From positions 111,104,001 through 111,168,000 of the forward strand of contig NC_058373.1 in the NCBI RefSeq assembly GCF_018350175.1: a DNA stretch of 64,000 nucleotides. The letters run 5' to 3'. A program made the position numbers and the translations under genes. This DNA is from Felis catus (taxonomy: Eukaryota). A model generated the notes under the pieces. The model had not been told where the DNA came from and did not search any database. It worked only from the letters and a program-made list of their open reading frames with translations. Positions 18,020 through 60,450 of the stretch are shown here, one piece after another. How positions within the stretch are numbered: position 1 is the stretch's first letter; every line of letters begins with the position of its first letter.

Positions 18020-19354
18020 AGGATAAAATAAGTTTTTATTTATAGTCTTATAGTAAAGGGGAAAGCCTTAACTTGCAAGACAATTCTTGGGCAGTATGTA
18101 CAACATACTTTTTATTTCCATGGAATGGAATCAAACACGGACTGAGACTACAGAGTACACACTAGAAATCAGCAAATGCCAGGAACGGAGTAGGAAAAAG
18201 ACAAAGAAATGAGGCCTAAACACACAAAACCCTTCACTGGGATCTGCTGACCGCAGCCAGGACCAGGGCTGGATCACACAATGGGAACGGGGTCCAGGAC
18301 AGCTGGAACAGGAAGGGNNNNNNNNNNNNNNNNNNNNNNNNNNNNNNNNNNNNNNNNNNNNNNNNNNNNNNNNNNNNNNNNNNNNNNNNNNNNNNNNNNN
18401 NNNNNNNNNNNNNNNNNNNNNNNNNNNNNNNNNNNNNNNNNNNNNNNNNNNNNNNNNNNNNNNNNNNNNNNNNNNNNNNNNNNNNNNNNGAAATAGGGAC
18501 AATTCACTCAGATTCAAATTTCAGTAGCAGGAAATAAATATCAAAACATCATCACTGGCCCTCAATACAAAACCTCTACCCGACCCAATCCTCCCTCCTT
18601 GTCCCACCCCCTACCACCCCCTGGCGACTACCACTTCACTGCTGCCCGCTGTCCCCACACATACCACACGAGTGTCACGCAGCCCTCCCTAAGGTTGGCT
18701 GGGAGAAGCAGGAGTGAAACAGGCCAAAGACTCTGTGCTGCAAATCTGTCCCCACTTGTATTTATACCACAAACTTCTTCAAGGATCTGGCCTTTCAATA
18801 GGAGCGATAAATAGCTTTTTAGAAAAAAACAAAAACAAAAACTTAAAAAGAAGGGGGATTAATTCTGATTACTCCAAACTGGTCATCTTCTTAAAGTAGA
18901 GCAGTCCACAGATTCACAAAGTCTATCAAACGGAGGTGAGGGTGGCCTGGGAGGAAAGGCCTGGGAGGGGCAGGAGTCCTCCGGGCATGTGCCCGGCGGG
19001 GCTGGAGGAGCTGGTGGGTGGTCAGGACACCATGTGCTCAGAGGTCCGGCCGGCCGTCTGTCCTCCACAGAAAAAGCTGCCAAGTTGGGGTATTTTGGTT
19101 TAAAAATTCCTGGTGGGGACAGGGAATCCCTGAAGGGAAACATTANNNNNNNNNNNNNNNNNNNNNNNNNNNNNNNNNNNNNNNNNNNNNNNNNNNNNNN
19201 NNNNNNNNNNNNNNNNNNNNNNNNNNNNNNNNNNNNNNNNNNNNNNNNNNNNNNNNNNNNNNNNNNNNNNNNNNNNNNNNNNNNNNNNNACTGAAAGGAG
19301 GATGGGACGATGGAGGAGACAGACAGTTTGTATTGCTGGCCTGCCCCGCGGAGC
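18020..19354 (-). other. MAX: MAX 3' UTR (partly under N blocks 18318-18489 and 19146-19289)
   Basis: Lies between the TAA stop and two AATAAA signals. Confidence 0.85.
18035..18116 (-). terminator. MAX: Tandem MAX poly(A) signals
   Basis: AATAAA on the - strand (tttatt) at 18111-18116 and 18035-18040. Confidence 0.8.
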
Positions 19355-19542
19355 TTAGCTGGCCTCCATCCGGAGCTTCTTCCTGCTTTGGGGCTCTTCG
19401 GGCTCCGACTCCGAGCNNNNNNNNNNNNNNNNNNNNNNNNNNNNNNNNNNNNNNNNNNNNNNNNNNNNNNNNNNNNNNNNNNNNNNNNNNNNNNNNNNNN
19501 NNNNNNNNNNNNNNNNNNNNNNNNNNNNNNNNNNNNNNNNNN
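19355..19542 (-). CDS. MAX: MAX exon 5 coding part (5' portion under N)
   Basis: 19355-19416 reads SESEPEEPQSRKKLRMEAS* (TAA 19355-19357). The 19542 boundary is inferred from the 188-nt coding length of a 160-aa MAX and falls in N block 19417-19556. Confidence 0.9.
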
Positions 19543-20810
19543 NNNNNNNNNNNNNNAGCGAGCGGGTTACAGCCTTCTGGAGACTAGGGAAGCAACCGAG
19601 TCTCAGCTCAGGGTCCAGCCTGTTCTTCCGATGGGCTTGCTGGCCCCCGAGGCTCAGGGTGGCTCAGAAGTAACTGCCTTCTGGTGCCTGTTCCACCCAC
19701 ACACTTCATTTCCTTCCTCCTTTCCCAGCCAGACCTGGGGGGCCAGTGGACATGGCCAGCCACTCTGCAATGCCTCCCAACCCTAAAGAGAAGGCTTGTG
19801 ATGTCACCATCCTGCCATGGAAGTCGACTGTAGAGACAGGAGCATACGCTCCCTGTGGGACCCAGCAGCACAATGACAGAGAAGATGGCCTGGCGATGCC
19901 AGGCTCCACAAGGGTGTGAAGGCCACACAACAGCAGGGAAGGATGACATAAGATGTCGGCCAAAGAAAAGTTCTGGCTTAGCTCTCTCGTACAAGATCCA
20001 CTTGGAAAGACAAGCTGGACACTTGGAAGCAAGTCGCCAATGCACACAGCATACCTGGGCCTCTCGACACACAGCCCCTCCATGCAGGCTGCGTGGCCCA
20101 GTAACCAACCCGATACTGCCCCCCACTGCCCATCCCTCGGGGTTCAGCTCATCTTGAGCCTGNNNNNNNNNNNNNNNNNNNNNNNNNNNNNNNNNNNNNN
20201 NNNNNNNNNNNNNNNNNNNNNNNNNNNNNNNNNNNNNNNNNNNNNNNNNNNNNNNNNNNNNNNNNNNNNNNNNNNNNNNNNNNNNNNNNNNNNNNNNNNN
20301 NNNNNNNNNNNNNNNNNNNNNNNNNNNNNNNNNNNNNNNNNNNNNNNNNNNNNNNNNNNNNNNNGGAGAACAGCATGGGCCTGGCCCATAGGCTGCCCTG
20401 ATTGGACTACCATTGACAACGGGGAGGGCTCACTGTCCCTGAAAACCTGGAGTTTCTGGTACTTACAAAGCACACTCCAATCCAAGGACCTCAAAGCTCT
20501 TTTGAGACACCTGATGCCAGGTGTGACCCCTACCGCAGGCAGAGCACCTGAGCCCCAAGAAGGGGAGAGATCAGGTCAGAAAAAATGTCTCCAAATGTCC
20601 AACCCCTAGACTCCACTGTTCCCTCACTGGCGGCTCAGGTCCTTCCTCAGGATGGTTCTAACACTCAACTATTCAGGCCCAAGAAGCAGGGCTGCCGCTG
20701 CTTATGAGCACGCGCTCCGTGACTGGTTCTGACTCTGCAGGCCCAGGTGCGAAGCCCCGACCTGGCCGGAGCACAGCAGGGCCGGCTGCCCCACCGGCTC
20801 CCGTGCTCAC

Positions 20811-33575: not shown

Positions 33576-33723
33576 NNNNNNNNNNNNNNNNNNNNNNNNN
33601 NNNNNNNNNNNNNNNNNNNNNNNNNNNNNNNNNNNNNNNNNNNNNNNNNNNNNNNNNNNNNNNNNNNNNNNNNNNNNNNNNNNNNNNNNNNNNNNNNNNN
33701 NNNNNNNNNNNNNNNNNNNNNNN
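33576..33723 (-). CDS. MAX: N block inferred to contain MAX exon 3 (108 nt; basic region / helix 1)
   Basis: Bases not visible. Inferred from ~7.7 kb distance to the exon 2 block, block size (148 nt) and a branch-point-like GCTAA just 5' of it on the - strand. The neighbouring block 33815-33970 is the alternative location. Confidence 0.6.
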
Positions 33724-36700
33724 TTAGCAATGTCGTTCCTTTTGCTTGGTATAGGTGGGTGGGGAATAGCCTGGAAGTATATGCTGTCAGCGCTGTCCCT
33801 GGCGATTGGGCTGGNNNNNNNNNNNNNNNNNNNNNNNNNNNNNNNNNNNNNNNNNNNNNNNNNNNNNNNNNNNNNNNNNNNNNNNNNNNNNNNNNNNNNN
33901 NNNNNNNNNNNNNNNNNNNNNNNNNNNNNNNNNNNNNNNNNNNNNNNNNNNNNNNNNNNNNNNNNNNNNNGTGCAACTCTCCTGCAACATCAGTCTTCCC
34001 CCACAACTTACTTATGTGACAGAACAGCCGCCAGTCCATGGTTAGGAAGTGACCAGGGAAAAGCTCCAGAGGGGCCCCTTCATAAAATGTGATCACCCCC
34101 ACTGTAAGAGATTCCTCATGGTGGGTGCCCAGGAAAGGAGTAAAGTCACTGGTGCAGTGCTTTTCATGTGAAACCCATCACCATGAGTCTGCTCTGGGCT
34201 CCAGCTTGCTAAAAGGGACTAGTTTAAGACCTGCTCACCAAATCATACAGTCGAAACTAAAACCTCTAGAAAAGCCAGATGCGTGAATCTGAGATTATGA
34301 CAGAGATGATAAAGACACCAAGTACATTCTGTGTTCCTGTTTTTTAAAGTGGATCCACAGTGCCATCCTGCCAAGGGCTTCCCCTCACACAGGCTATGCC
34401 AGAAAGTTTGTTCTTAGACAGCAAATCATCTGACACTCACAGGCTCTGAATAAATTTCCTCAGGCACCTGTGGCAGGTCAAGCTTATTTGGCAGTATCTA
34501 AATACCCACAGACTGGACCGAAGTCTTTATCCTGTCCTGCTTAGAATCACAAAGAACTATCAGCTGGAGAGCGACAAAGACTGGTGACAAATCACAAGCG
34601 GCAAAATACGCTGGCTTCAGGCAAAAGAGAGTGCTGGAGAGCACTGCAAGAGAGCTTCAGCAGGTCCCTAATAAAAGAGCATTTCCTCCAAATGGAACAC
34701 AGACACTTAACTAGGTCTAAAGCAAGAACCTTGATCACTTCCACACTTTGGGAATTATGGAGAATAATACACTCTGAGAATTTACCCTGAATACACAAGG
34801 TTGCGCTGAGCTACTCAAAGAGCAAGTCTGTATATGGAAATTTCGGGTAGCTTTAACCTACCCAGACAGAGCACCGGGCACTTTAGATATGAAGCGACAA
34901 GAGTAAATAACTTGGCTTAGACAAGAATGCCTCAAATGAATCCTTGTACTAGACAAGATGCACAGGCAAAAATCTATAAAGACAAGTCATGGGAATGAAA
35001 GGACTTAGAATTCTACTGTATAAGCCTAAGTCTGAGTCATTACAGAGGAAGAGGAGGCTGGGAGGAGCTGTGGTAACCAAAGTCCCTTCCTGGTGTCTCA
35101 AGCACAACACCTCACCTGTAGCTCTGCTGAATCGGACACCTGGTTCCCATCATGGCCATGGTTCTTTCTACATGGCATGGCAACTCATCTTCAGGGCAGA
35201 TGCCTGGGCACTTCTAACACCCTCCTAACCTTGTTAAAGTCTGAATTCGTGGTAAAGTGAGTGCCTGCTGAACTCCAATGACATATGAAATCTAGGGGGA
35301 CACTGAGGGAATGATCAAGCTTGGACACCAGATAACTTAAGGCTAGAGGTAGGTGTGCTGCACCACACAGCATTAGAACAAGAATGCCGATGCCTTCTAA
35401 CAGCAGTATGAAATAACTTGGAAGTATTGAACATATTTAAGTACCCAGTCCTTTCCTAACTTACTGTCCCCTCTAGTCACCTACACAGGTAAGGTGGGCT
35501 GGGTTCTAACCTTGACTCTACCTAAAGCACTGAGAAGGTGGAGAGGACATCTGCCTCTCTAGCATTTGTTACCTACTCCCTAAGATGGTTTATTTACATG
35601 CAAATTAACTGCACAGCTTTGGTCTCCAGCAGCAGCCCAAGATACTCCTGTCTACTAAATCACCCTGATTCCTGGCCCTCCTCCCGGCTTAAGAGCTGTG
35701 CACAGAAGCAGTGACAGCAGAGTTACCCACAATTCCTCTCGTTGATACAAATAAAATCCTAATTGTCTGTTTTCTTTCTGGGAGAGTCCTACATATCTCA
35801 AAAGGTTAGAATCAAGTTGAACTTGGTTTCACTCAGGCCTGCACTAGACAGGTGGAGCCAGGTATAATCTAACACCAAAATCATCCCCACAATGCACTAC
35901 CCCTTCCCATTCACTGAGCCTTGAAAGGACTCAAATGGACAAGTCTTTTGGTTAGAGGATTGTTAAGTGAACTTGGCTGTGGACCATCAGCAGAAATCTT
36001 GGCTTCTTATCTGGGGAGCCAGCCAAGTTTGAGAAGTTGGCTCAACAAGGAAAGGCAGCAGTCCACTGCCTGGTAGAAAGCCTAGGCTGGGGACTGTTGT
36101 TCTCGAAGTAGTGGATGGAATTTCTGTGGTGGTTCCAGGCCCAATTTAACTAGCAGAAGGGTAGAATCTTAGACCAGTCCCTGTTGCCATGTCCATCCCA
36201 AGCAGTTACTCTTAACCAGAGTCAATTTCAAAGCTCTCAGAGACAATGGCAATGAAGTATTGTCTCCTCCTTAGGCCTCATCTGAAAGAGCAAATTAAAA
36301 ATATGCAGAACTAACATGCCTAACTCCAGGCAACTCTAGACTAAATGATACCTCTAGTGGCTTGAAAGACCATATGAAAAACCTTTACACAATGCTGAGA
36401 ATTCTGTTCAGGAAACATTTCCAAACCACAGAGATCCATCCAGCCCGATAATGTTCCCCTGCACCCCCCCCCCCGCCCCAAATCATCCAAATGGAGGGCC
36501 AGTTGCCAGGCTTATCACTGCTTTGTTAACAGTCTTCACTTGCTGGAAACCTTTTTCGAAAGAGCCAAGATTTCAGAGTTGAGAATGAAAAACAGGGTAA
36601 AGACTTCCAGTGTAAAGCATCTGAGATCCTCCCACAAACTCAAAACTAGTTTAAAACAAGGGGGTGGGAGTGGGGTGCGGGAAGGGCCAAACAACTGTGT

Positions 36701-41330: not shown

Positions 41331-41491
41331 NNNNNNNNNNNNNNNNNNNNNNNNNNNNNNNNNNNNNNNNNNNNNNNNNNNNNNNNNNNNNNNNNNNNNN
41401 NNNNNNNNNNNNNNNNNNNNNNNNNNNNNNNNNNNNNNNNNNNNNNNNNNNNNNNNNNNNNNNNNNNNNNNNNNNNNNNNNNNNNNNNNNN
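41331..41491 (-). CDS. MAX: N block inferred to contain MAX exon 2 (27-nt alternative microexon, p22 vs p21)
   Basis: Bases not visible. Position ~0.6-0.8 kb downstream of the exon 1 block fits the known structure. Confidence 0.6.
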
Positions 41492-43130
41492 GGGTGGGGA
41501 GTCGGCCCGACCCCCCTCCCTCCCTCCCCACCCCACGCCGACATCACCCCAGCGGGATCCGGTAGCGGGGCAGGGGGGTCCCGAGCGCCGCCCCTCCTTC
41601 CAGGATCCGACATCGGCCGGAGGGGATTTAGAGCACTGTCTCCTCCCCCTCGCACCCAGCTCGGGGTATCTGGGCACTCCCAACCTGTCCGCTCTCCCTC
41701 ACCCCCCAGGATCCGCGGGTCACGGGAAGAGGGTGATCGCGGACCCAGGGGGCAGGTCCTGAGCGTCGTCCCCTTACCCGGGATCCGGACAATGGGATCC
41801 CAGGCGCACCCCGTCCCAGTCCCCCGGATCCTGAGCGGTATAGGGTGGGAGCGGGAGGCCGCAGCACCCTCCTCCACGGGGGGAGGTGGGGGTCCCAAAG
41901 GCCGCGTGTCTCCTCCCCACCTCCAGTCCCAGAAGGCCGCTCCGGCTAGGAGCCCGGAGGGGAGCGAGCCGGGAGCGCGACAGAGGCGGTCCCAGTCAAG
42001 GGCGGGGGGGGGGGGGGGGGGGAGGCGAGGGGGGTGGGGGGTGGGGGGGAAGAGGAGGAGGCTGCCCGACCCCCTGCCGCCNNNNNNNNNNNNNNNNNNN
42101 NNNNNNNNNNNNNNNNNNNNNNNNNNNNNNNNNNNNNNNNNNNNNNNNNNNNNNNNNNNNNNNNNNNNNNNNNNNNNNNNNNNNNNNNNNNNNNNNNNNN
42201 NNNNNNNNNNNNNNNNNNNNNNNNNNNNNNNNNNNNNNNNNNNNNNNNNNNNNNNNNNNNNNNNNNNNNNNNNNNNNNNNNNNNNNNNNNNNNNNNNNNN
42301 NNNNNNNNNNNNNNNNNNNNNNNNNNNNNNNNNNNNNNNNNNNNNNNNNNNNNNNNNNNNNNNNNNNNNNNNNNNNNNNNNNNNNNNNNNNNNNNNNNNN
42401 NNNNNNNNNNNNNNNNNNNNNNNNNNNNNNNNNNNNNNNGACCGGGCCCGTCACGCTGGGGCCGCCGAGACTTGTAGTTGTCGTCCCTTTGACTGACGGC
42501 CCAGCTGGAGCCAGTAAAACTACAAATCCCATAAGGAACTGCATATAGTCGTCGCCAGCCCAACCTGTTGACGGAGCCCAGGGCGCCTGCGTGTCCTGTG
42601 GAGGGGGCGGAGAGAGAAGCGGCGCGATGCCTGCTGGGAGTCGTAGTCCGCAGACCGCGAGTTGTCAGGAGGTTTTCTTCCCAAGGCAGCAGAGGAGGCT
42701 GCTGGGAAGATAGGACACGTGGAGGGAGTTGGGGCTCCAGGAGCCGGGCATGGTCTGAGCGCTGGGCGCCGGGCCCAGGGGGCAGGGTGGAGGCTCTGGG
42801 GGAGTAGCCGGCTGCCTAAATAACGTTGCCTCTCCTCGTACGACTAGTTTTACTTTGTCTTTTTGGTGCCTGAGTTGCTCTGCATTGCGCCCTGGGGCGT
42901 AACCCACTAGGGCCGGGGTTGGGCGGGGGAGGGGAGGGGGGTGCAGATCTTGCTGCTGCAGACTAGGGGGCGCGGCTCCGAATGCCCGTGCGTACCTTTG
43001 GGATCTGGCTGTGGGGAGGTGTCAGTGGCAGGTGTTAAGTGGTGTTACAGGACAGGCAGGATAACCGGCCTTGCTGGCGGACCGCTCCCAGCCTTGAGAA
43101 TCTTGTATTCATTCACGCGGGGTAACCATG
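41492..43130. promoter_or_regulatory. MAX: MAX CpG island / promoter
   Basis: Very GC- and CpG-rich, GC boxes (GGGGCGG), ACTACAnnTCCCA motifs at 42519-42531 (+), 42628-42648 (-) and a variant at 42464-42479 (-). Confidence 0.9.
42082..42439 (-). CDS. MAX: N block inferred to contain the MAX TSS, 5' UTR and exon 1
   Basis: Bases not visible. Centre of the CpG island, flanked by promoter motifs. No MAX start-codon sequence is visible elsewhere. Confidence 0.65.
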
Positions 43131-52683: not shown

Positions 52684-53778
52684 AATCAGCTTCACTGAAG
52701 TCAAATTTATATATAATTACCAAGTAATTATACATATATATGTAAAAACACTCTTTTCAAACTGTGTGGTCACATGAGTTTTGGCAAATCTATACAGTCA
52801 TGTAACCACCATCCCAATCAAGATATGGAACATTTCCATCACCCTTGAAAGTTCTCTTCTGCCTCCTTGCAATCTCCTACCCTTACTCCCTGCCCCAAGT
52901 GACCATCGATCTTATTTTTTAAAAATGGTAAGGGCGCCTGGGTGGCTCAGTTGGTTAAGCGTCCGACTTCAGCTCAGGTCACGATCTCGCGGTCCGTGGG
53001 TTTGAGCCCCGCGTCCGGCTCTGTGCTGACTGCTCAGAGCCTGGAGCCTGTTTCAGATTCTGTGTCTCCCTCTCTCTCTGACCCTCCCCCATTCATGCTC
53101 TCTCTCTCTCTGTCTCAAAAATAAATAAACGTTAAAAAAAAGTTTTTTTTTAAATGGCAATAAATGGAATCATACAGTATGCAGGTAGCTTGTTATGCCT
53201 GGCTTCTTTCAGTAGCTTAATGATTTGGGATTTGGCCATGCAGTTAGTTCTTTTTCATACTGATTAGTATTCCATTGTACGATAGTTTATCCATTCACCA
53301 ATGTGGCTTGTTTTCTGCTTTTGCAAATTACAAATAAAGGTGCTGTAAACATTTTTGTACAAGTCATTATGTAGATACAAGTTTTCTCTTGGGTAAATAC
53401 CTAAGAGTGAGATTGTTGGGTCATATATTAAATGTATGATTAATTTTATAAGAAAGTGGCAAACTATTTTTCAGAGTCACTGTACCATTTTGCATTCCCA
53501 CAGTGCCCCACATCTTCATCAGCTTTATTTATTACNNNNNNNNNNNNNNNNNNNNNNNNNNNNNNNNNNNNNNNNNNNNNNNNNNNNNNNNNNNNNNNNN
53601 NNNNNNNNNNNNNNNNNNNNNNNNNNNNNNNNNNNNNNNNNNNNNNNNNNNNNNNNNNNNNNNNNNNNNNNNTGCTTCAAATCTTTCATTTATTAAAAAA
53701 CTGAGTTATCTTCCTAATATGGAACCGTAAGAGTTCTTAATATATTCTGGATATAAGTTTTTTTTTAAGTTTATTTAT

Positions 53779-53817
<39 letters not shown>

Positions 53818-56137
53818 AGTGGCGGGGGGGTGGTGCAGATGCAGGGCTCGAACCATGAGATCATGAACCATGAGATCATGAACTGAGCTGAAACCAAGGG
53901 TCAGAGGCTTAACCATCTGAGCCACCCAGGCGCCTCTGGATATAAGTTCTTTATTAGAAGTGTGTTTTTGCAAATATTTTCTCCCAGTCTGTACTAGTTT
54001 TTCCATTTTTCTGAATGTTGTCTTTTGAACAGCAAAGGTTTTTCATTTGGTGAAGTGTAATTTATTCTTTTTTTTTTTTTTTTTTTTTTTGTATGTAGTT
54101 TGTCCTTTTTGTGTCCTATTTAAGAATTATTTGCCTAGGGGTGCCTGGGTGGCTCAGTCAGTTAGGTGCTGACTCTGGCTCAGGTCACCATCTCACAGTC
54201 TGTAAGTTCAAATCCCATGTTGGGCTCTGTACTGATCCCTCAGAGGCTGGAGCCTACTTCGGAGTCTGTGTCTCCCTCTCTCTCTGCCCCTCCCCACTTG
54301 TACTCTGTCTCTCTCTCAAAATAAATAAAACATTAAAAAATTAAAAAAAAATTATTTGCCTAACCCAATATGACATTTTTTTTCTGTATTTTCTCTTAGA
54401 ACTTTATAGTTTTAGCTCTTACATTTAGGTTTATGATTCATTTTGTGTTCATTTTTAACAGCTTTTTAAACAGATATAATTCACATACCATGCATTTAAT
54501 CCATTCAAAGTGTACAATTCAATGTTTGTTTGTATATTTAGAGTTGCAGTCATCAGTATAATCTGATTTTAAACATTTTTATCAAAACAAAAAGAAATGT
54601 CATTACCCATTAGTAGTGTGACTTCATATTTCTCCTCCCACACTCTTAGGTCTAGACTTTCTATCTCTATAGACTTACCTACTGAGTTACTTTTTATGTG
54701 TGGTAAAGGTAAGGGTCAAAGTTCATTTTCGTACATGTCTGTCCAATTGTTATAGCATTGTCATTTGCTGAAGACTATCTTTTCTCTAGTGAACTACTCT
54801 GTCATCCTTGTCCATAATCAATTGACCAATATGTGTGAGTCATGTTGAACTCTCTGTTCTGTTTCATTGATCTATGTGTCTGTCCATATGCCAAAACCAC
54901 ACTGTCTTGATTAATATGGTCTCGTAAGAGATTTAAAATGCAATAATGTGAGTCCTCCAATTTTGTTCTTTTTCAAAATAGTTTTGACTACATTCTTTGC
55001 ATTTCCATATAAATCTTAGGATCAGCTTGTCAATTTCTTAAAAAAAATAAGCAAGGTGGGGATTTTGATTGGGGTTTCTTTGATTTTTAGGTTAATTTAG
55101 GGAGAATTGACATTTTAACAATATTGAGTCTTTTGATTCATGAACATAGTATATCTCTCTCTCTCTCTTTTTTTTTTTTTAGGTCTTCTTTAATTTTTCT
55201 CAGCAATATTTTACAGTTTTCAGCAATAGGTATTACATTTTTTCTTAGACTTATTCCTAAGAATTTCATGGTTTTCCGATGCTATTGTAAATGTTATCTT
55301 TTAAATTTTAATTTCTGATTGCTTACTGTTAGTATCTTGAAATATGCTTTTTGTATATTGACCTTGTATTCTGACTTTACTAAACTCACTTATTTTATTC
55401 ATTGTTTTATAGATTCTTTGAGATTTTCTACATGGATGATAGTATTCTTGTTTTTTTCTAAAGTATATGTCTTTTATTTCTTTATTTTGCCTATTGTACT
55501 ATTAAAGAGCACTGATTCAGTGAGAACAGACATTTTGCTGAGTTCCTAATTTTAAAGGAAAAGTATTTTTTTCACCATTAAGTTTGATGTCCTCTATCAG
55601 CTTGAGAAAGTCATCTTCTATTCTTACTTACCCGAGTATTTTTATTATGAAAAGGTTCTGGATTTTGGCAAATGCTTTTTTTTTTTTTTTTTTGGTGTGT
55701 GTGTGAGAAGTTTATTTATTTTTGAGAGAGAGAGAGAGAGAACACGTGTGCATGCATGCATGCACATAAGTGGAGGAGGGGCAGAGAGGGAGAGGGAGAC
55801 AAAATCCAAAGCAGGCTCCAGGCTCTGAGCTGTCACAGCAGAGCTTGATGTGGGGCTTGAACCCATAAACTGTGAGATCATGACCTGATCCAAAGTCGGA
55901 TGCCTAACTGACTGAGCCACCCTGGCGCCCCTTGGCAAATGCTTTTTTAAAAAATCTATTGAGATAACCCTATGTTTTTTCCTTTTTTAGTTTACTGATA
56001 TGGTGACTTTATACTATTGATTTCTTTGAATGTTGAACCAACTTTGCATTCCAGGGATTGATTCTGCTTGGATAAATATATATGTTTTTTCCCTGGATTT
56101 AATTTGCCAAAATTTTATTAAGAACTGTCATGTTTAG

Positions 56138-56360
56138 GGGAGCCTGGGTGGCTCAGTCGGTTAAGCGTCCGACTTCAGCTCAGGTCACGATCTCGCGGTC
56201 CGTGAGTTCGAGCCCCGCGTCAGGCTCTGGGCTGATGGCTCAGAGCCTGGAGCCTGCTTCTGATTCTGTGTCTCCCTCTCTCTCTGCCCCTCCCCCATTC
56301 ATGCTCTGTCTCTCTCTGTCCCCAAAATAAATAAACATTAAAAAAAAATTAAAAAAAAAA
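56138..56360 (+). mobile_element. Young felid SINE
   Basis: TSD aagaactgtcatgtttag/aagaattgtcatgtttag. Confidence 0.96.
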
Positions 56361-56377
56361 AAGAATTGTCATGTTTA

Positions 56378-56517
56378 GACCTCCCACGATCATGTCTGGA
56401 GAGTGGTTGGTATTCTGCCAGCTTTGGAGATGAGAGGGAAACCAAACTTGACAGAGGTACCCATTCCATTCCCAGCTTGCTCGGTAGCTGGTGTTTGGAA
56501 GACTCTCTGCAACAGTG
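56378..56517 (+). ncRNA. SNORA7: SNORA7 (ACA7) H/ACA snoRNA retrocopy
   Basis: GACCTCC...TCTGGAGAGTG...TATTCTGCCAGCTT...CCCATTCCATTCCCAGCTTGCTC...GGAAGAC...ACAGTG matches recalled SNORA7. 140 nt, H box AAACCA 56439-56444, ACA box 56512-56514 three nt from the end. Directly upstream of RPL32, its known host gene. Confidence 0.88.
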
Positions 56518-56584
56518 TTCAAGCCCTGAGCAGGAAAGCCTCCTTCCAGGACTCTTTGACACCATCTCTGCCTCGTTCTTGAAG

Positions 56585-57045
56585 GCATCATGGCTGCCTT
56601 CAGACCTCTGGTGAAGCCCAAGATTCTTAAAAATAAGACCAAGAAATTCATCTGGCACCAGACTGATAGCTCAAAATCAAGCACAACCAGCGGAAACCCA
56701 GAGGCATTGACAATAGAGTGTGCAGAAGATTCAAGGGCCAGATCTTGATGCCCAACATTGGTTACGGGAGCAACATGAAAACAAAGCACATGCTGCCCAG
56801 TGGTTTCTGGAAGTTTTTAGTCCATAACCTCAAGGAGCTTGAGGTGCCACTGACGTGCAACAAATCTTACTGTGCAGATTGCTCACAATGTCTCCTCCAA
56901 GAACCACGAAGCCATGGTGGAAAGAGCAGCCCCGTTGGCCATCGGTCCCATTGCCAGCCTGTGCAGCAAAGTAAACGATCAGACAGCTTATGTGCATGTC
57001 GTATTTGTGTTACTAAAACCATAAACCTACAAAAAAAAAAAAAAA
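56585..57045 (+). pseudogene. RPL32: RPL32 processed pseudogene
   Basis: ATG 56590: MAAFRPLVKPKILKNKTKKFIWHQ..., then [41 protein letters not shown] in another frame. Intronless, frameshifts near 56660 and 56876, poly(A) 57031-57045, flanking TSD. Confidence 0.96.
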
Positions 57046-57789
57046 GAATTGTCATGGTTAGATTCATAAGCATATTATCTCAGAGTTTTTGGTAATATCT
57101 TTTTCTGGTTTTTATATCAGGATAATGAAGGGAGACGTGTTCTGCCTCTTCTGTTTCTTGAGAGGGTTTGTAAAATTGGTACTATTTCTTTATTATTTTC
57201 TTCCTCATTTTTTTAGTTTGAATACTTCTACATTATTTGAATCTTGCCTAAAGAGAATGCAATAGTTAAAACTTTTTTTTTCTATTTTGAGATAATTTTA
57301 TACTTACATAAAAATTGCAAAAAAACAGTATGGAGAGTTCCCCATTTATCTTTCACCCAGATTTTCCTAATGTTAACATTGTACATGATCATCAAAACCA
57401 GGAAAATAACATTGATATATTACTGTTAATTAATTTATATATCTTATTCAAATTTTACCACTTTCCCAATAATGGCCCTATTCTTGTCTAAGATTCCACA
57501 GTCCATTTAGTTGCCATGGACCTTTTTCCCCTCTCTCCTTTCAGTACTTTTGAATAATTTAGTATAAAGCCATTAGCTTGTGCCAAACAAAGTATTCATC
57601 AGTGGGGAGTGGGAGTTTCAGAGACCTGTCATAGACATAGGAGCCCAAATGTGGTGAGGCACATCAATGGATTGGAGTGGTGAGGGCCCAACAGGATTGT
57701 TAGGGACTTAGTTGAGAGAGGAGGGCCCTCTATGCAAGGGGAAGGGGTAAGGGTGGGCCCAGAGTGGGTGAGATGATGAGGGCATCCAT

Positions 57790-59290
57790 ACAGGGCTATG
57801 ATGGTAACAACAGAAGATTGGTTACACATGGGGCTTGATAAAATAAATAAACATACTGAGAATAATGAAAGATAGGTGTTTCTCTATCAGAAAAGGCAAT
57901 TATGATATGGAGAGGAAGGTAACTAAAATGAATGAATCTTGTGGTATTGGAATAGAATTGAAGGTAACTGTGTAGACTTACGGTTTTCACATGTATCAAT
58001 AGATACAGAAGTATAGATCTCCCGAGCTTCTAGCCTCAGAGCACCTCTGGGGGGAGTAACATCCCAATAGCAATAAGCATACCTACTACCCAGATCTTGA
58101 CTTCTAAATAACATTCTCCACCAAAGGAAACCTAGGCTCTTAAAATTTTTTTTTTCAACGTTTATTTATTTTTGGGACAGAGAGAGACAGAGCATGAACG
58201 GGGGAGGGGCAGAGAGAGAGGGAGACACAGAATCGGAAACAGGCTCCAGGCTCTGAGCCATCAGCTCGAACTCCCGGACCGCGAGATCGTGACCTGGCTG
58301 AAGTCGGACGCTTAACCGACTGCGCCACCCAGGCGCCCCAGGAAACCTAGGCTCTTTAGAGAAGTGACTGATTTAAGGGCTAGGGCAGGGAAAGTATAAG
58401 ATGAGTCTGGAATCTGTTTTTGCATCAGAAATTAAGGAGTTCTAGAAGAATAATGGAGATATGTCAAAAGAACATAGAAGCCAGTGTGATGGGGCTCCCA
58501 CCTGCCAAATCTGAAATAATTTGAGCATCAAGATAAATAATAATAATTGCAGATCATAATCCATTTAATAAAATGGAAATCAGTGAGTCTATGCTGAAAT
58601 AAGTCAATGAATAATAAAGAAGGAGAGGGAACAGCTCTCCTTTATCATGGAATGCCAACTAATGAATGTAAAATAGTGATAGAATTAGAAAATCACTTTG
58701 GCAACCAAAATAATAAAAATAATTCAGTCAAGAACCCTCATGAAATGCATGCTGGGTGAAAGTTGAGTGAGGAATGATTTATATCACTTCAAAATACCTC
58801 CCAACAAATATTTGATGATTAAGAAGGAAAAAGAGGGTAAATTTACGATGGAGAAGTCTGGCACAGAGCACCTAATCAAGTGATCAAGATTAACGTCACA
58901 AGTAATGGGACAAATGGGCTTTAAGCACTTGTGATAGAATGTAATCAAGAGCACAAAGCATCTCTTTTATGATATCCCTGGCAAAAATGCATAATCTAAA
59001 TCTCATCTTGAGGACACATCAGGCACACCCAAAATAAGTAACTTTCCAGGAAACAGCTAGCCTATAATCTTCAAAAGTTTTGAGTCTGTGAAAGACCAGG
59101 AACGACTGGAGAACAATTTCAGATTGAAGCAAGTTGGAGACACACGGTAACTAAATGCTATGCACGATCCTGGCTTGCGTCTCTTTGCTATAAATGATGA
59201 TATTGGGACAATTAGTGAAGCTTGAATGGAGCACGAGAATTAGGTAACAGTAACATATTGATGTTGGTTTGTGATTTTAATGGTTATAAT
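57790..59290 (+). mobile_element. L1MC/MD-type 3' UTR fragment interrupted by a young SINE (-, 58146-58339)
   Basis: L1MC-like motifs (cctactacccagatcttgacttctaaataacattctccacc). SINE TSD aggaaacctaggctctt. Confidence 0.7.
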
Positions 59291-59665: not shown

Positions 59666-60450
59666 TTTTTTTAAAAATTTTTTTAATGTTTATTTATTCT
59701 TGAGAGAGAGAGAGACAGAGACAGAGCCTGAGTGGGAGAGAGGCAGAGCAAGAGAGAGACACAGAATCCAAAGCAGGCTCCAGGCTCAGAGCTGTCAGCA
59801 CAGTACCCGACGTGGGGCCCGAAACCATGAACTGTGAGATCATGACCAGAGCTGAAGTCAGATGCTTAACTGACTGAGCCACCCAGGTGCCCCCAAGGGA
59901 ATGTATTCTTAAATGTTAAAGATTAGTATCTCTTTGAGTTGGAATTATGAATTTTCTTCTTTTCTGTTCTGTTTGGGTTTTTCTTAGAGTGACATATTTT
60001 TTTAATAGAGAAAGACAGAGGGAGGTGCACGTGCACCAACGGGAGAGGGACAGAGAGAGGGAGAGAGAGAATCTAAAGCAGGCTCCACACTCAATACAAA
60101 ACCTGAGATCATGACCTGAGCTGAAATCAAGAGTTCAACATTTAACTATCTGAGCCACTTAACCATCTGAGCCACTTAGGNNNNNNNNNNNNNNNNNNNN
60201 NNNNNNNNNNNNNNNNNNNNNNNNNNNNNNNNNNNNNNNNNNNNNNNNNNNNNNNNNNNNNNNNNNNNNNNNNNNNNNNNNNNNNNNNNNNNNNNNNNNN
60301 NNNNNNNNNNNNNNNNNNNNNNNNNNNNNNNNNNNNNNGTGCTGTCAGCGCAGAGCCCTACAAGGAGCTTGATCCCACGAACTCTGAGATCATGGCCTGA
60401 GCTGAAATCAAGAGTTGGACGCCCAATGGACTGAGCCACCCAGGCACCCC
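59666..60450 (-). mobile_element. Cluster of three Can-SINEs (59666-59893, 59997-60180, ~60339-60450 partly under N)
   Basis: SINE bodies ending gagccacccagg. The first has TSD aagagaatgtattctt/aagggaatgtattctt. Confidence 0.9.

Follow-up and report, generated by a model that had tools for sequence, protein, structure and literature searches.

Retroposed copies of small nucleolar RNAs (snoRNAs) that carry part of their host gene have been known since 2006. Weber (2006, PLoS Genet; PMC1687206) found that 30 of the 42 human RPL10 pseudogenes are Type-3 snoRNA retroposons (snoRTs). These start at the 5′ end of a mature snoRNA, run through the whole downstream intron into processed 3′ exons and a poly(A) tail, and are flanked by a target-site duplication (TSD) at a TT/AAAA-like site; their parents are often ribosomal-protein genes, as RPL32 is here. 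In the mechanism proposed in that study, the host pre-mRNA is cut endonucleolytically and trimmed exonucleolytically to the snoRNA's 5′ end, and its 3′ part is spliced and polyadenylated. Pairs of a snoRT and a SINE with a triplicated target site were described in the same paper, the main text of which contains no occurrence of the SNORA7/RPL32 pair or of felids.

A second survey (Luo and Li, Nucleic Acids Res, online December 2006; PMC1802619) listed 202 human H/ACA-related sequences, 37 of them exon-containing cases. Like the copy described below, these retrogenes were made by L1, and some came from partially processed, exon-containing host transcripts. Four retrogenes of SNORA7 (ACA7) are included, ACA7c-f, with ACA7d being of the tailless type; these are human, whereas the present copy is felid. 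Human SNORA7B, located in RPL32P3, is another SNORA7 copy associated with a pseudogene of RPL32; it is said to lie there ‘as an intron’ (PMC6509762) and may have arisen by retroposition or by DNA duplication.

RNAs of the corresponding kind have been observed in human cells. In human, SNORA7A sits upstream of the RPL32 start-codon exon, in the matching host intron, and Zacchini (2022; PMC9394076) described a dyskerin-bound RPL32 transcript, present on polysomes, whose 5′ UTR still contains this intron. The H/ACA intron-retaining transcript of EIF4A1 is mostly a 5′-truncated fragment stabilised by dyskerin (PMC9394076). Such dyskerin-bound 3′ fragments, together with the SPA and cSPA RNAs (those with a snoRNA as 5′ end and a polyadenylated 3′ end) (PMC9394076), are the kind of RNA that the template of the present copy must have been, but they are RNAs seen in cells while the copy is a DNA fossil. 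Moreover, the mapped EIF4A1 fragment starts at the end of the preceding exon and not at nucleotide 1 of the snoRNA, and a 5′-trimmed form of RPL32 is unmapped in that study.

Here we describe an insert in a 64,000-nt stretch of Felis catus DNA, referred to as the window, in which all positions are numbered from the first base. Set against the Type-3 definition, the insert has a snoRNA start (nucleotide 1, 2 or 3), processed exons, an A15 tail, a TSD and an L1-like target site. It differs from the snoRTs of Weber in that the snoRNA-containing intron precedes the start codon, and consequently the whole RPL32 reading frame was carried and not just a C-terminal part. We consider it very probable, from its anatomy, that the insert is a Type-3 snoRT of SNORA7/RPL32, now a dead pseudogene, which arose from a snoRNP-trimmed RNA with the help of L1. 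The first-pass annotation of this DNA had held that the type is not new, and the published definition of Type-3 snoRTs (PMC1687206) bears this out. The insert is a clean, fully delimited further example of a class known since 2006, without a new phenomenon.

RESULTS

A complete SNORA7 copy at the 5′ end of the insert

The features of the locus are collected in Table 1. In an Rfam scan of positions 55000–58500, the SNORA7 family (RF00409) matched at 139.6 bits, compared with a gathering score of 100 (E 5.5e-31). Since the match covers all 140 model positions and is not cut off, the SNORA7 copy is complete, and the full 140-nt H/ACA RNA that had been claimed for the insert is indeed there. RF00409 was the sole Rfam family above threshold within the 64-kb window. 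In the Rfam alignment the hinge H box is kept, as is the ACA box, whose distance from the 3′ end is three bases. The same alignment contains four non-canonical pairs, and about 7–8 strongly conserved consensus positions are changed.

Table 1. Features of the SNORA7/RPL32 insert and the adjoining SINE (window positions)
Feature	Positions	Strand	Evidence
Target-site copy (a), adjoining the SINE on its 5′ side	56122..56138	+	15/17 to the TSD pattern
Presumed carnivore tRNA-derived SINE, A-rich tail ending in A12	56138..56362	+	tRNA-like match 56142-56226, 23.4 bits, below threshold
Target-site copy (b), 3′ TSD of the SINE and 5′ TSD of the probable snoRT; last 2 nt overlap SNORA7 nt 1-2	56363..56379	+	TSD match
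Full-length SNORA7 (H/ACA) copy	56378..56517	+	RF00409, 139.6 bits, model 1-140
Inferred 3′ end of the SNORA7-hosting RPL32 intron	56518..56584	+	Sequence features; not the exon-1 leader
Disabled, intron-free sequence of RPL32 exons 2-4, ATG at 56590	56585..56982	+	tblastn, PF01655 matches
3′ UTR remnant, CATAAA at 57020-57025	56983..57030	+	Sequence
A15 tail	57031..57045	+	Sequence
Target-site copy (c), 3′ TSD of the probable snoRT	57046..57062	+	16/17 to copy (b)

A copy in this state might be a working, lineage-specific snoRNA paralogue, released from a host transcript by processing, next to a decaying RPL32 part. Its score above the gathering threshold and its two retained boxes would suit such a role, and retroposed H/ACA copies can function (PMC1687206, PMC1802619), with processing from a host transcript being possible for copies in sense introns. 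Some RNA-labelled metatranscriptome runs also contain a share of the words of this locus, from 0.21 to 0.75. However, these runs come from metatranscriptomes of gut or mammal samples, in which DNA may be present, a Pfam search of ten long open reading frames of the window revealed no host gene, and the non-canonical pairs and changed consensus positions match the drift of the dead coding part described below. A functional SNORA7 paralogue at this site therefore appears very unlikely to us.

The 5′ boundary of the insert was examined together with its TSD. The 17-nt core of the duplication is present on both sides of the insert, and the last two bases of the 5′ copy (GA) are also nucleotides 1 and 2 of SNORA7, a 2-nt microhomology. 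Such microhomology is usual at the 5′ junctions of L1 insertions. Because GA is common to the TSD and SNORA7, the insert starts at nucleotide 1, 2 or 3 of the snoRNA. The insert had been said to begin with the first base of mature SNORA7 right after the TSD; model position 1 does lie at 56378, but with the shared GA the end is defined only to nucleotides 1–3.

A boundary at this place might also have arisen by chance, if an RPL32 mRNA with a retained intron had given rise to an ordinary processed pseudogene and its reverse transcription happened to stop at the first base of SNORA7. Truncation at the 5′ end is common in copies made by L1, 12 of the 30 U70 snoRTs carry only partial snoRNA copies (PMC1687206), and human cells contain an RPL32 mRNA that retains an intron (PMC9394076). 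By our own estimate, however, a random stop on a template of at least 700 nt would fall within a 3-nt window in about 0.4% of cases or less, and the published sets of snoRTs pile up at nucleotide 1 of the snoRNA (PMC1687206). The direction of synthesis bears on the same question. Reverse transcriptase crosses the snoRNA from 3′ to 5′, so that a snoRNP acting as a block would end the copy on the snoRNA's 3′ side, and a copy ending at SNORA7 nucleotide 1 suggests instead that the template itself ended there. We regard a chance stop as highly improbable and favor a template with a trimmed 5′ end.

An intron-like stretch joins the snoRNA to the start-codon exon

The 67 nt on the 3′ side of SNORA7 contain a branch-point-like CTTTGAC (56554–56560), a pyrimidine-rich tract and a terminal AG (56583–56584), and they directly abut the first base of the start-codon exon. 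The sequence GCATCATGG begins at this base, 56585, and the ATG occupies 56590–56592. We infer from these features that the stretch is the terminal 3′ part of the SNORA7-hosting intron of RPL32.

The order of the parts also bears on a chimeric origin, in which the L1 reverse transcriptase would have begun on an RPL32 RNA and then jumped to a separate SNORA7 molecule in its mature form, in the manner of the U6/U3 chimeric retrogenes. At the 5′ end, chimeras of that type likewise have a small RNA of full length (cited in PMC1687206). In the present insert, though, the RPL32 and SNORA7 parts are linked by the 67-nt intron-like tail, in the order that is expected for the gene, and a switch would have had to land at the exact collinear base; Weber also argues against template switching for snoRTs (PMC1687206). 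The chance of such a switch appears to us extremely small, and a single continuous RNA is by far the better reading of the junction.

Comparison with other RPL32 retrocopies places the exon boundary. The predicted proteins of ordinary RPL32 retrocopies (P0009, P0031 and P0036) contain an exon-1 leader that reads ..GSHLLLGI before the first methionine. The window copy reads ..LVLEGI-M where the ordinary retrocopies read ..LLLGI-M, and the ..GSHLLLGI leader was not found in any frame of 56494–56589. Given this difference in the leader (LVLEGI versus LLLGI), the copy agrees with the mature mRNA only from GGCATCATG onward, and exon 2 accordingly starts at 56585. Both the acceptor at 56584/56585 and the absence of RPL32 exon 1, as proposed in the first-pass annotation, agree with these results. 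An ordinary processed pseudogene of mature RPL32 mRNA was rejected, as an exon-1 leader spliced to exon 2 is absent from all frames of 56494–56589.

The RPL32 coding part is intron-free and disabled

We searched the locus by tblastn using a 135-aa RPL32 query, the majority sequence of 68 eL32 proteins of 135 aa each. Amino acids 1–26, 29–98 and 99–135 were aligned without an intron-sized gap, and in the central piece 60 of 70 residues were identical (E 3e-43). Three-frame translation and tblastn placed residues 1–26 in one frame, 29–98 in a second and 99–135 back in the first, the last with a 3-aa gap. When the stop-free stretch 56670–56939 was used as a database query, it matched 479 eL32 (PF01655) proteins with a best E of 3.5e-37. 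In a felid isoform (P0077) an insertion after VKIK marks the junction of exons 2 and 3; the window copy is continuous there. The coding sequence is thus intronless, as had been claimed.

The span from ATG to stop is 393 nt in the copy versus 408 nt expected, with net changes of −4, −2 and −9 nt, that is, two frameshifts and a 9-nt deletion that disable the copy. The position of the stop codon reads CAG, and translation from the ATG runs for 52 codons before it stops. Of the 118 aligned residues, about 20 differ (∼17% amino-acid divergence), and many of the differences are changes at arginine codons, typical of CpG decay. A neutral nucleotide drift of ∼8% would put the insertion roughly tens of millions of years back. 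On its sequence, the RPL32 part is a dead, intron-free pseudogene.

The 3′ end of the insert has the 3′ UTR, A15 and 3′ TSD that had been assigned to it. The UTR remnant is 48 nt long and its CATAAA lies 5 nt ahead of the A run, the last two A residues of which may belong to the TSD.

One target site is present three times

The two 17-nt copies of the TSD that flank the insert (56363–56379 and 57046–57062) are identical at 16 of 17 positions. This pair had been recognized before, but a third copy at 56122–56138 had been missed. It agrees with the TSD pattern at 15 of 17 positions, with one of the two mismatches being the boundary base, and 0.41 matches would be expected per window. Copy (a) extends two nucleotides further to the left as AA, following TT, and thereby gives an L1-endonuclease-like TT/AAGAA. 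Along the strand the order is copy (a), SINE, copy (b), snoRT, copy (c).

Between copies (a) and (b) lies a tRNA-derived element, which we take to be a member of a carnivore SINE family. The tRNA-like match in the Rfam scan was below threshold, and the A-rich tail of the element contains A12 at 56351–56362. In the same scan a KCNQ1OT1_1 match of 12.3 bits, also below threshold, was seen on the − strand at 58223–58341; it is most likely spurious, since the sequence there resembles the antisense head of the same SINE.

As a separate TSD pair belongs to the SINE and to the snoRT, the two elements stem from two retropositions into a single site, not from one chimeric insert. Before either insertion the empty site probably read ..TT/AAGAAYTGTCATGKTTAG(A)/TTCAT.., again L1-endonuclease-like. 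Copies (a) and (b) differ by one base plus one boundary base, (b) and (c) by one base, and (a) and (c) by two bases plus one boundary base; these few differences do not give the order of the two insertions. What is new at this locus is a single target site present three times and common to the SINE and the snoRT, a pattern already described by Weber (PMC1687206).

The outer flanks were also inspected. Positions 55960–56121 and 57063–57260 resemble, on the + strand, the 3′ portion of an old L1 ORF2, an identity that we assume from an ORF2 motif; one frame gives MLNQLCIPG.. and another ..SFSGFYIRIM... A Pfam search of these two flanks found no family.

Distribution of the locus and context in the window

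For positions 56355–57085, 0.94–0.95 of the sampled words were found in 14 DNA-type runs (12 labelled ‘DNA?’ and 2 of unstated kind) from five studies (P1–P5). Thirteen of the runs are labelled with the same species and the remaining one with a second organism. With so high a share of words in these runs, the insertion looks fixed or common.

Six further runs, labelled or guessed to be RNA, contain 0.21–0.75 of the words of the same interval. They are gut or mammal libraries of the metatranscriptome or metagenome type, plus one run labelled organism C, and may reflect either transcription or DNA carry-over.

Ten runs of N, 137–358 bases long, lie within 18318–20364, 33576–33970, 41331–42439, 53536–53672 and 60181–60338. 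They create long artefactual open reading frames in several frames at 19–20.6, 33.5–34.1 and 41.2–42.6 kb. The Pfam search of ten long open reading frames of the window, several of which span masked N runs, returned no family.

DISCUSSION

The following course of events would account for the insert. In a germ-line RPL32 transcript the intron hosting SNORA7 may have been kept, with the introns farther downstream spliced out and a poly(A) tail added. A cut or decapping, followed by 5′–3′ exonuclease trimming, would have removed exon 1 and the intron sequence preceding the snoRNA, and we believe that this trimming halted at the assembled H/ACA snoRNP. Target-primed reverse transcription by the L1 endonuclease and reverse transcriptase would then have started at the poly(A) tail and run to the 5′ end of the RNA, placing the copy in a TT/AAGAA site inside an old repeat. 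The same site also received the presumed carnivore SINE, which gives three copies of the target sequence. Subsequent drift would explain the ∼17% amino-acid divergence, the two frameshifts, the 9-nt deletion and the loss of the stop codon.

The template postulated in the first-pass annotation, an RNA with its 5′ end at the snoRNA, the tail of the SNORA7 intron unspliced, later introns removed and a poly(A) tail, fits the anatomy of the insert and is that of the published Type-3 definition and mechanism (PMC1687206). It had further been suggested that the copy is germ-line evidence for a stable, H/ACA-capped and potentially RPL32-coding transcript. The copy does indicate that the RNA existed once in the germ line; a single decayed copy, however, says nothing on the stability, abundance or translation of that RNA.

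A bolder proposal would be that an uncapped, polyadenylated RNA ending in SNORA7 and carrying the full RPL32 frame was a regular, stable cytoplasmic species of the felid germ line, retroposed repeatedly and perhaps translated in a cap-free manner, and that the site shared by the SINE and the snoRT reflects one prolonged or re-used L1 engagement instead of two independent hits. We consider this unlikely.

The practical value of the finding lies in annotation, namely of an RPL32 pseudogene plus a SNORA7 pseudo-copy, and current understanding is unchanged. The triple target site adds a further case of the unexplained re-use of a single L1 target site by a snoRT and a SINE. Neither the parent pair SNORA7/RPL32 nor the felid lineage is highlighted in the founding snoRT papers. 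With the snoRNA intron located before the start codon, the RNA that was retroposed would have carried the whole ribosomal-protein frame behind an H/ACA 5′ end, an arrangement that fits the dyskerin-bound, intron-retaining RPL32 transcript of human cells (PMC9394076).
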